Origin: Glycera tridactyla
Taxonomy: Eukaryota
Length of the DNA stretch: 64,000 nucleotides
Reading direction: 5' to 3'
Assembly (NCBI GenBank): GCA_965644265.1
Contig: OZ286474.1
Span: forward strand, 15,810,001 to 15,874,000
Under the pieces are notes generated by a model. That model made no database searches. It was not told the origin of the DNA and saw nothing but the letters and a program-made list of their open reading frames with translations. Each line of letters starts with the position of its first letter. Position 1 is the stretch's first letter. This document shows positions 1,545 through 60,012 of the stretch, in pieces. The position numbers and the translations under genes are program-made.

Positions 1545-1876
1545 ATGGAATGAAATAAATTGTTTCAAGACAAATTTCATTGAATAAAAATTTAGTGTTT
1601 GAACAACTTCCAAAATTTGATAATCACGTCTCACCTTCAACTTCATTTGTGAATCATTCGTAGCTGCCATTTAGTCAAGAGAATTAACTCAGCCCAAAAT
1701 GTGTTACCTCAGTTTTTATCAGAAATCTTGTCTTATCTTTAAGTACTTCCAGAGAAAGAGGATGAAATCCAGTAATACATGCTCATTTGGCAGGTTTGAG
1801 TCTGAACCCTTGTTAAGAATGTGTTCGTTTTCAAACCCAGTTTGACTTGCATGCACCCACCTATTTCCTTCCCCAG

Positions 1877-56426: not shown

Positions 56427-58556
56427 CTGGAATGAAATAAGTATAAATTATATTAAAATCTGTATACTTCCCAGTTAATCAGATAAAGAATCAAAAGATG
56501 TAATTTTCAATTTCTTATTATTATCTCTTATTTTATCATGGTACTTCTCCCGTATTTTACAGAAATGTAGACTTCCCTGTGTGGTGTAGAGTCGTAAAAC
56601 TCACCGGCACTCCGGAATAATGAAAGTTGTTCCTCAAAAATCTGAGAGATATTGGTATGAAGTGCCGGTTATGTACCCGTCACTTGTATCGGTCAAACTA
56701 ACATATTCACTGTATGAATACCGATATCAATCAGTTCCGTTTGATTTCCATGTATTTATTGTATAATTCTTGCCTTGTTTCTTCATCTATATTTCTTGTT
56801 GAATTTGTTTCTTATCCTCATCATTCATTCAAATTTCTTCATTATCTACTTGTAACATTTCCATTTCTCCTTTGATATTTAATATTAATAATTAACGATG
56901 AATCCCCGTGTTAGATTTGACATTCTGATGCTTATTCAAATAGGTTGGCCTCTCGTATGAGAAGCATGAAAAACCAGGGCTTCAGTGAGCCAGATTGAAA
57001 AATGAGTGAGAGAAGTTTTTTTTCCCATCAACTTTCCCTTGGACGAGAATGTTTCCAACGAATCCACTCTTTGAATAATATAATTTATCTTGAAGTGATT
57101 TAACTTTCTAATTCTTTACATCTGTATATACATTTCTTGTCAAAGTAAAAAGGATACTACTCATTCTTGATTACTGTTGATTGCAAGTTGCAGTATACCC
57201 TTTATTCATGTTGCCCTTTGTTATTTCATGGATAGACACGATTTCAGATTGCCGAAAGATTATACAATGCTGAGTCTGGCTAGTACATGTAGGGGAACAG
57301 AGGACATGTTCACGACCTGTTGCTCTAACGTTAAAGAAATTCCCATCATCAAATTTACTCATGGACATTTCTGTATCCATTGTAGTTTTTATACAAAGTC
57401 TCACAGATATCATATCCAGAATCAAATTAAACTCTGATCAGACACATGGATGTCAAATCAAGTTATAATTACATGTACGGTATGTACAACATGTACTTGC
57501 ATCCATTCAGTATTGGAATAAATTTGAATGGACGTCTTTATGTCTGGTGAGCCGAATTGTACTATACAATAAATTTGATTTCAATATCTATATCATCAAA
57601 TATTCCGTATCCAATATGACCAATTTCCATGTTCTGATATTGTATTTTTAAGCCCCAAAATAGCCGTGCATGTATGTACTGACATTCTTCTACATTCTAT
57701 ACATGCAAAGCTATCACTCAAACAATTCTGTGTCTTCCTAAATTGGAATGCAGATACTGGAAAGATTCATTTGGGATTGGTGATTTACAAGAGTGACATT
57801 TGTTGCCAATCTTGATATTTTTGTTAAGTTTGATCTGCATGTAATTTGCAGATTTATACAAGTATGTTGAGCGTGCAATATAAGTTTCATATCCTATGGG
57901 CATTAATCATTCATCATGGACGTATTTCTCACTCTGGGAAGCCAGAGTTTGTTTTGTGTGAACCATATTTTTTTACTTTGGTTATTTGAATTCATCAATC
58001 AATACAATATCTGTTCATATATTCTGTTTAGTTTTGAAGACTAAAGATTGGCTCATGTGGATTGCCTAGGATCTAACTTTAATGGACATCTGGGCATGTT
58101 CTACTTTGAACAAGGTGCACCTAATTGCTATGGATATCTTGATTCCACTTCTTCACCGGTGTTGGCAGATGAATCTTACTCAGGTAGCCTCGTACCTATT
58201 CCTCTCTCCTCTGTTTCTTGCAGGACAGGCTTCACATGTACTTGTGTGTGGAGAATCAGAGTAATGTTTTCTCAACTTGGATCGATCCTTGATTGGCACA
58301 GAACGACCACAAATTTGTAACATTACACAAAACCATAGCAAGTAAATCAAACAATGAAGTGAAACCTGCGATGAAAGACCACTGTATATGGCATCAATAA
58401 TTTCAAAAATCGGTCTTGTAAAAAGGCTGGTCTCTCCTTAGTGTAATATTTGATGATGTCAAAAAGGAGCTGCCCCGAAAAAGCGATCGTTCATCGGAGA
58501 TGGCCACTCACCGGGATCACTGGTTGCAAGTTTCACTGTATTCACATGTATTTCTT

Positions 58557-58708
58557 TGATGAACGAAGATTTACCTACTTTGGAACGATTTGTTGAGACG
58601 TATCACATCGTTTCGACCACTCTACAAGCAGCCTTGATCACGTGATGGATCAGTGTTGTTGATACGTCTCAACAAATCGTTCCAAAGTAGGTAAATCTTC
58701 ATTCATCA
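58557..58708. repeat. Inverted repeat, 49-bp arms with one mismatch, 54-nt loop
   Basis: tgatgaacgaagatttacctactttggaacgatttgttgagacgtatca pairs with tgatacgtctcaacaaatcgttccaaagtaggtaaatcttcattcatca. Confidence 0.95.
58601..58648 (-). ncRNA. Candidate minimal type I hammerhead-like motif (variant core)
   Basis: - strand ATCAC GTGATCA A GGCTGCT TGTAG AGTGGTC GAAAC GAT GTGAT: helix I, core, helix II and GAAAC in the correct order; deviates at G3/C8 and position 16.1. Confidence 0.35.
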
Positions 58709-60012
58709 TGGATGATCTTGGAACCGAAAACAATATATTTGCAAATGTATTTCGTTGTTATTGCCATGAATTCATGTTGTTCTCATGAATTTTGGCAACT
58801 CGGATCATCACACCAAAAGTTGTTAAACATATACTTTCACTGACTGCGATGTAATAGCGACCCGTAAGAGTTGGGTCAGCGGTGATGCAAGTGAAGATGT
58901 GTGTGAATCGTCCATATGTGTGTATATTTGGTTCATCAGCCACTTGAATTGCTGAGCTTGTGCATATTTTGTTTGTAAAATATAGGGGAGTGCGCTTTGC
59001 TGCCTGGCGGGGTCGGGAAGGGTCGGAAGCCGCGCTGCGTGTGGCTATATTTGAGTATGTACAGAGTCGTGCTTCTGTTGACATTGTATTTTATTATTGA
59101 CTTATGTTCATCATGCCCTCTCCATACCACCATTGTGATTTTGTGTCGACACTATTCACATTGTGATCACAAGATGCATACCTATGGCAATCATACACAA
59201 ACGGAAGGTGACTGGAATTGCCCGTTTCAAATCAGCATGCTACTCTTTCTCTTGATGAGTCCGAAACACACGGCATACATAACCCACGGGTTGATACATG
59301 CCGTTAAACCTCAAACAAACAAAAAAAAAGCTGTTCTTGTCACCGATGATTTGTAAATGATAGGGATTGTGCGCTGTACCTTACCAGTCTTCCTGTCTCC
59401 TACCAATTACAGATCCTGGGTTGCACCCAGAATGGGGGGCATGGGGGCATTTCACACATTATTGCCAGTGTGCGGCCCTTTTTGAGGCAGTCAGGGGCCA
59501 TAGTGCCACCTAAATTTACCAGATAGTTTCAGTTTCCCATCTTGAGTTGACACATTTTGGTCAATTATATGAAGAAATGCCCCCTTTTCCAAAAATGCCC
59601 CCGATTCAGAAAATCCTTGATGTATCCCGGAAGTCCTCTGGTATGAAGAAATGCAGGATCGGGATATTTTGACAGGGAAATTGAATTTTATCTGTTCAGT
59701 GTAGAATGCTGATTTTGAGATGTAAATGGGAAATTCCAGTGACTGGGCATTGTTACTTGTGTCAAGTGACAGTGATACATGGTGTTCAGGTTACATTCTG
59801 TATTTCATCTTGTACAAATATCATATGGGAACAATTAATAAACTATTATATTTTCCATCTTGGTGTTCCGTTGTATGTGGATGTGCACAATAACTGAATT
59901 TCCAGACTGGTATCTCTCACAAACCCTGAACATGATATGATGATTGGTTGGTTTGTTTTATGTCCAGTAAGCACCATCTGGGCAATATTGAAATGCCAAT
60001 GCAATGGACATA

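Follow-up and report, generated by a model that had tools for sequence, protein, structure and literature searches.

The genome of Glycera tridactyla (GCA_965644265.1) contains, in the 64-kb stretch of contig OZ286474.1 analysed here (positions 15,810,001 to 15,874,000, called the window in what follows), a near-perfect hairpin whose loop, read on the minus strand, resembles a hammerhead ribozyme with the letters of its 3-8 pair exchanged. In the full-length hammerhead structure, the C3-G8 pair emerged as the key tertiary contact. The locus raises two questions, namely whether a G3-C8 version exists as a natural ribozyme, and how such a motif came to lie between long inverted arms. We consider it likely that the hairpin is a dead head-to-head insertion of a Penelope-like element (PLE), and that it carries the hammerhead of its master elements, in which a G3-C8 swap has become fixed in a clade.

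The hairpin and its parent element

The inverted arms of the hairpin are 49 nt long each and 98% complementary, with 54 nt between them (Table 1). A preliminary description of the locus, made from the sequence alone, had recorded arms of 49 bp with one mismatch together with the letters of the minus-strand loop, and both are exactly as given there. Its 152-bp feature covers the hairpin; the repeated unit is longer and also includes a tail of 36 nt. The 186-nt stretch has a predicted folding energy of -95.1 kcal/mol, whereas its shuffled versions average -39.7 (z = -13.3), none of 200 being as stable.

Table 1. Features of the hairpin insertion and of its hammerhead motif (window positions)
Feature	Position	Strand	Remark
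Left target-site duplication, 11 bp	58546..58556	.	matches 58745-58755 at 10/11
True repeated unit, hairpin plus 36-nt tail	58557..58744		
Left arm, the PLE's last 49 nt, inverted	58557..58605	-	arm of inverted repeat; element 3' terminus (...GTTCATCA) at 58557
Minimal type-I hammerhead motif	58602..58646	-	descriptor match, 81-copy table, covariation
Helix I of the motif	58646-58642 with 58606-58602	-	ATCAC / GTGAT
G3	58641	-	
C8	58636	-	
Extra (unpaired) A	58634	-	
Helix II of the motif	58633-58627 with 58621-58615	-	7 bp, three of them G-U
GAAA (G12-A15.1)	58614-58611	-	
A16.1	58608	-	
U17	58607	-	
Predicted cleavage site	between 58607 (position 17) and 58606	-	
Remnant of the PLE ORF C-terminal coding region, up to the fold-back junction	58647..58659	-	aligns with the last RT/GIY-YIG codons of full copies
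Right arm, the PLE's last 49 nt, sense orientation	58660..58708	+	
PLE tail, optional 30-40 nt beyond the usual 3' end, at one unit end only	58709..58744	+	
Right target-site duplication	58745..58755	.	pairs with 58546-58556

Some copies of this sequence extend into a long interior with an ORF on the strand of the motif, encoding a reverse transcriptase (RT, with YVDD) followed by a C-terminal GIY-YIG endonuclease. The Pfam matches, to RVT_1 (E 1e-5) and then to GIY-YIG (E 0.0016), fall short of the curated cut-offs; YVDD and GIY-YIG are directly readable in the ORF, and we found 4010 homologous database proteins with RT/GIY-YIG domains (PF00078, PF01541), coming from lancelets, corals, mussels, fishes and metagenomes. 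The parent is therefore an endonuclease-positive PLE with a C-terminal GIY-YIG, and these longer copies establish the Penelope origin that the preliminary description had proposed. Full elements have the motif on their coding strand; the C-terminal residues of the ORF product are encoded by its 5' half (the core codes for Arg-Asp-Gln), with the stop codon of the RT/GIY-YIG frame in loop II. Most of 30 PLE copies stop 49 nt past the predicted cleavage site, where unrelated flanks begin. Short copies carry the tail, as do 3 of the 30 long ones (L044, L047 and L052), the rest being tailless. A distant RT match found near one copy (L035:7180-7896, minus strand), with 25% identity to the PLE ORF, belongs to an unrelated retroelement.

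The unit in the window consists of two severely 5'-truncated 3' ends of this PLE, head to head, with the tail on one of them. The left end is inverted and includes the hammerhead, while the right end is in sense orientation and comprises the terminal 49 nt plus the tail. We suggest that the 5'-truncated ends were joined head to head within a single insertion event, a process known from PLEs, in which one arm would stop at the normal 3' terminus, the other would carry the optional tail, and the inverted arm, being long enough to retain the hammerhead, would leave the motif in the hairpin loop.

A single-copy locus had been named beforehand as evidence against the hammerhead reading; a first look at the 2.04-Gb genome returned 2088 candidate copies of this short retroposed unit. 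The boundaries of the unit were taken from 30 copies aligned together with flanking sequence. Target duplications of 8-15 bp, different for each copy, surround about 20 of 22 short copies and sit at the same unit boundaries as the duplication of the window copy. The position of the fold-back junction varies among copies and both subfamilies of the PLE have made hairpin units, which suggests recurrent, independent events rather than one amplifying master.

PLE insertions have a known signature, consisting of an adjoining inverted 5'-truncated copy, a tail of 30-40 bp at one end only, and target-primed insertion (PMC8557442, PMC11167929). The unit has the inverted truncated copy, the one-sided tail and variable duplications of 8-15 bp, and the architecture of these complex insertions explains its hairpin, its one-sided tail and the variation of its duplications. 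Unlike typical cases, it is extreme, since both copies measure 49-100 nt and the whole insertion is a 190-bp hairpin. The inverted pLTR remnant suggested in the preliminary description fits well, the arms being the last 49 nt of the PLE, inverted and in sense, with the PLE-specific tail. Its other suggestion, a MITE-like carrier, does not. A MITE or fold-back DNA transposon, with the hairpin as its functional unit (for example, as a small-RNA precursor), would account for a long near-perfect 49-bp stem in a short element with many copies. However, symmetric terminal inverted repeats and a fixed-length target duplication are absent: the tail is one-sided and the ends asymmetric, the duplications range from 8 to 15 bp, the fold-back junction is not constant among copies, and both arms are the 3' end of an RT-encoding retroelement. 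We rejected this candidate, which is scarcely credible on these data.

Other arrangements of this kind were seen in the course of the analysis. Many pairs of complete motifs on opposite strands, 60-300 nt apart, lie head to head in the genome, for instance at C1:79347905(-)/79347991(+), C4:102962740(-)/102962929(+) and C11:55136782(-)/55136948(+). Their architecture is that of the window hairpin, except that each arm is of sufficient length to contain the hammerhead. Two copies, L004 and L010, have identical flanks and target duplication, and represent one insertion in a duplicated genomic segment rather than two events. At the end of a metagenome contig (L076:1440-1496), a sense motif turns into its own reverse complement halfway through helix II, which is another fold-back junction, this time inside the hammerhead.

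The hammerhead motif and its copies in the genome

A minimal-hammerhead descriptor with positions 3 and 8 left free had one match in the 64-kb window, the motif itself, and none in 40 dinucleotide shuffles. Minimal hammerheads of PLEs are characterized by a short helix I, a long helix II, an unpaired nucleotide between 9 and 10.1, and G10.1-C11.1 (Cervera and De la Pena 2014, PMC4209133). In the motif, helix I measures 4-5 bp and A9 is followed by an unpaired A; G10.1-C11.1, a 7-bp helix II and GAAACGUC are also present. It resembles the published type-I forms (PMC4209133) in its location on the sense strand at the PLE terminal repeat or 3' end, in the length of helix I (4-5 bp) and helix II (7-8 bp), in the unpaired nucleotide between A9 and G10.1 followed by G10.1-C11.1, in a palindromic 15.2-16.2, pointing to dimeric action, and in the many dispersed, truncated and inverted copies per genome. 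It differs from them in having G and C at positions 3 and 8, where they have C and G, and in that the ORF end and a CACGTG palindrome both overlap its 5' half.

All 29 long copies have a helix I of 4-5 bp, GUGAUCA, the unpaired A and a 7-bp helix II starting with G-C, and their 3' half contains GAA, ACGU and C17, followed by GUGA. The core has the form GUGANCA (G3...C8): in place of the canonical C3 and G8, the pair is kept with its letters swapped. An Rfam search with E up to 10 found no hammerhead in the window copy or in consensus-like copies, and it likewise missed seven control hammerheads of PLEs, which were canonical or U3-A8. Published descriptors start with CUGANGA (PMC8557442) and for this reason miss the G3-C8 form.

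A relaxed descriptor also produced a CUGAUGA match in antisense, within the endonuclease coding region (L054, about 1700-1745, minus strand). This match has a mismatch in helix II, lacks G10.1-C11.1, contains an unpaired spacer of 16 nt and lies on the wrong strand. It recurs in about 20 other PLE copies, and we take it for a chance match that coding constraint has preserved.

For a per-position table we used 81 motif instances with distinct flanks (L001-L073). C8 is present in all 81 copies. G3 is found in 72 of them, and A3, always after a C, in the remaining 9, as decay of a CpG would give. Positions U4, G5, A6, A9, the unpaired A, G10.1, C11.1, G12-A14, A15.1, C15.2, U16.1, G16.2 and C17 are each found in 73-81 of the 81 copies. 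Within this range, the unpaired A occurs in 80, G10.1 in 79, and C11.1 in 75, its losses being C to T at a CpG; U16.1 is found in 79 and C17 in 73. The palindromic 15.2-16.2 (ACGU) is retained, with C15.2 in 79 copies and G16.2 in 76, and in PLE hammerheads this palindrome lets two copies form helix III jointly (PMC4209133). Almost every recurrent substitution in the 81 copies is a C-to-T or G-to-A change in one of the motif's four CpGs (2.1/3, 11.1/12, 15.2/16.2 and 17/1.1), suggesting that methylation drives CpG decay in this genome.

The family consensus is GAAACGUC, with U16.1 and C17, and has the conserved core together with a base other than G at position 17. Most copies keep G3 with C8 and have U16.1, the check that the preliminary description had proposed. 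The GUU given for the cleavage site in the preliminary description has to be replaced by GUC. The window copy alone among the 81 has A16.1, and it also has U17, so that, compared with the U16.1 and C17 of the consensus, it is probably inactive; a possible loss of activity had already been suspected from A16.1, and the comparison supports this at the level of sequence. Besides these two changes, the 49-bp stem would compete with helix I and contribute to making this copy inert. The window copy itself is an ordinary dead insertion.

Exact copies of the window family gave 186 pattern matches in the genome, and G3-C8 motifs with another helix II, all followed by GAAACGUC, gave 81, the reversed-pattern control being 0 for both. 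In a second family, the commonest of those with another helix II, searched with positions 2.1, 3, 7 and 8 free, we found 55 copies (reversed control, 0), all with C8 and 49 with G3, the remaining 6 having A3 after C. The coordinates of this family coincide with the 3' ends of endonuclease matches 61-66% identical to those of the window family.

The loose genome pattern also matched an abundant dispersed repeat without helix II, unrelated to the hammerhead, which starts with CACGTGAGCAAGGGGATCAG and ends with GTGAAAC (for example at C1:17967180-17967217, and in about 200 other places). Minimal hammerheads of other PLE families were found in the flanks of some copies, with C3-G8 at L007:2233 (+) and at L062:2343 (read on the minus strand), and with U3-A8 at L017:1714 (+). 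All three Watson-Crick versions of the 3-8 pair coexist in one genome.

The G3-C8 pair is fixed in a clade of PLEs

From metagenome contigs, 80 related PLE loci were scanned by the descriptor with positions 3 and 8 free. Their minimal hammerheads lie on the sense strand, 23-180 nt past the end of the ORF match, and inverted ones also occur just upstream of truncated ORFs. About 28 of these loci have the C3-G8 pair and 5 have U3-A8 (L079, L082, L104, L129 and L140). Among them, C8 was found only in L076 and L075, which are the two closest relatives of the window family. L076, with 66% protein identity, contains CACGTGACCA twice and CACATGACCA once, and its family is accordingly G3-C8 with C at position 7. 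L075 (57% identity) has A3, A7 and C8, with ACAU replacing ACGU, both CpGs being decayed. These two lineages share with the window family the downstream 49-nt region and the tail, which makes their homology independent of the descriptor.

In a maximum-likelihood tree of the RT-endonuclease region, the window family, L076 and L075 form a clade (SH-aLRT 99), nested among lineages with C-G (L077, L150, L074 and the decayed L141). A distant relative with the canonical core, L101, is colinear with the window family and differs only at 2.2, 3, 7 and 8. The swapped core occurs in two metagenome lineages and, within this genome, in a minimum of two PLE families. A natural G3-C8 covariation, as the preliminary description had put it, is what the relatives reveal, since homologous PLEs have C3-G8 or U3-A8 at the same site and the G3-C8 lineages group in one clade. 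The motif is thus homologous to the PLE hammerheads, and its swapped pair is fixed. The sister lineage L113 is ambiguous, having a GTGATCA box and a decayed CUGAAGA core that share one 3' half.

Within the clade, positions 4-6, 8, 9, the unpaired A, 10.1 and 12-15.2 are constant, while N7 is U, G, C or A depending on the lineage. In a sequence-only MAFFT alignment, 95.9% of the helix II cells pair, with changes on both sides in three of the pairs; in controls displaced by one to three columns, 21-46% pair. The helix II variants in this genome (5'/3': GACUGCU/AGUAGUC, GAUCACU/AGUGAUC, GAUCGCU/AGUGGUC, GAUCGCU/AGCGGUC and GAUCGUU/AACGGUC) form a chain of compensated steps, in which 10.3-11.3 and 10.4-11.4 alternate between C-G and U-A via U-G, and 10.6-11.6 passes from C-G to U-A. 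Helix I, which was misaligned by MAFFT, was read directly from the sequences for L075; its AGUAC/GUACU differs from AUCAC/GUGAU in two pairs, both compensated. The motif has therefore evolved in the clade with its structure preserved.

Natural variants of the 3-8 pair in the literature searched are U3-A8 only, reported by Perreault et al. 2011 (PMC3088659) and in the Cercyon PLEs of Schistosoma (PMC4209133). All G3-C8 cores encountered in this full-text literature, to which Lunse et al. (RNA Biol 2017) on variants of the PLE hammerhead does not belong, were engineered. As in the U3-A8 hammerheads, the case described here is a natural tertiary covariation at 3-8 that keeps the Watson-Crick geometry. 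However, U-A can arise from C-G by two transitions via a U-G wobble, whereas G-C requires two transversions without a pairing intermediate. Engineered C3G/G8C hammerheads were described by Martick and Scott 2006 (as cited in PMC11167929), for the PLE hammerhead of Anolis (PMC11167929) and in PMC3884650. Their core letters are identical to ours, and the double mutant partly restores the cleavage lost in the single ones: in the PLE hammerhead, C3G and G8C each abolish cleavage (PMC11167929). Those are laboratory variants with reduced activity, whereas the swap is here natural, clade-fixed and present in hundreds of copies.

Origin of the swapped core and its possible activity

A chance look-alike is one alternative to a ribozyme core. 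GTGATCA is half of a ATCACGTGAT palindrome, the palindrome is real, and the remainder of the motif could have arisen accidentally; the loose pattern did match the abundant unrelated repeat, and a 19-base pattern matched one unrelated GC-rich phage contig without PLE in a scan of viral contigs, a match that we attribute to chance. Nevertheless, the motif sits where related PLEs have undisputed minimal hammerheads and has in common with these the unpaired nucleotide, G10.1-C11.1, the long helix II, the short helix I and ACGU. The descriptor had no match in the 40 shuffles of the window, and the reversed patterns had none against 186, 81 and 55 real matches. An accidental origin is contradicted by these comparative data, and we regard it as very improbable.

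Another alternative comes from the surroundings of the core. G3 is the last letter of a CACGTG palindrome. E-box-like CACGTGA boxes, some of them CpG-decayed, occur 10-75 nt upstream of canonical or U3-A8 hammerheads in six relatives (L077:1643, L080:2282 and 2308, L113:1279 and 1297, L129:1061, L130:2014, L144:1126 and 1153), and in many homologous proteins the box is translated as SHVT or SRD close to the C-terminus. Many related PLEs have one or two such boxes where the ORF ends, upstream of the hammerhead, and in the window family one lies about 25 nt upstream of the motif (L054:1860-1900). The CACGTGA box might serve the terminal repeat as a promoter or as a recognition element, and G3 could be kept for a reason unrelated to catalysis, namely the palindrome. 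The motif would then be a pseudo-ribozyme, whose catalytic role was lost in the clade: the 5' part would be kept as a CACGTG DNA or coding motif and the 3' part for recognition of the 3' end by the PLE machinery, leaving a G3...C8 complementarity without function. The boxes of the six relatives and their SHVT/SRD translations speak for it, as do the dispensability of the hammerhead for PLE insertion in vitro (PMC11167929) and the predicted minimum-energy fold of the 45-nt motif, where helices I and II form and G3 pairs with C17. On the other hand, the letters after the box vary outside the clade, while inside it N7 is any base and C8, A9, the unpaired A and G10.1 are fixed; all helix II changes keep pairing; and the coding frame would equally allow a canonical core. 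A free N7 between such fixed letters, with a paired helix II, fits an RNA structure and not the constraint of a DNA box or of coding. We find the loss of catalysis in the clade unlikely.

Two routes to the swapped core can be considered. The colinearity with L101 suggests two substitutions in place. Alternatively, the canonical 5' core may have been lost and replaced by the upstream box, with C8 compensating, and the same letters would then have two functions; this second route is also the basis of the pseudo-ribozyme proposal. A 5' core rebuilt on, or merged with, the CACGTG box, in which the box fixes G3, C8 compensates and the letters serve both functions, is a tentative idea that we hold to be possible and somewhat doubtful.

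Returning to a functional hammerhead in the master elements, their transcripts would self-cleave after GUC (between GUC and GUGA, 49 nt before the 3' end of the element), probably as a dimer through the palindromic ACGU, or aided by a PLE protein. The partial rescue by the engineered double mutant, in a PLE hammerhead too (PMC11167929), speaks for the feasibility of such cleavage. Against it, PLE minimal hammerheads cleave poorly in vitro (PMC4209133), read ends at the hammerhead site are lacking in Anolis (PMC11167929), and a G3-C8 variant is reported to work less well with C17 than with G17 (PMC3884650). Given this preference and the predicted G3-C17 pair, the G3-C8 form with C17 may misfold. 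Among Logan contigs from sequencing runs, whose RNA status is uncertain, no ends were found at the predicted site.

The role of PLE hammerheads is disputed (PMC8557442, PMC11167929). The clade-fixed G3-C8, the free N7 and the compensated helices provide independent evolutionary evidence that it is the pair that is selected and not its letters, which suggests that PLE hammerheads are under selection. If the core was indeed merged with the box, these elements would be a natural experiment in which selection acted on the 3-8 pair rather than on its letters, and PLE families without a canonical hammerhead may hide core-swapped ones. The copies also offer natural sequences for probing how a G3-C8 core copes with C17, in view of the competing G3-C17 pair predicted. 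As standard searches miss the swapped-core form, surveys that score PLE families as being without hammerheads may undercount them.
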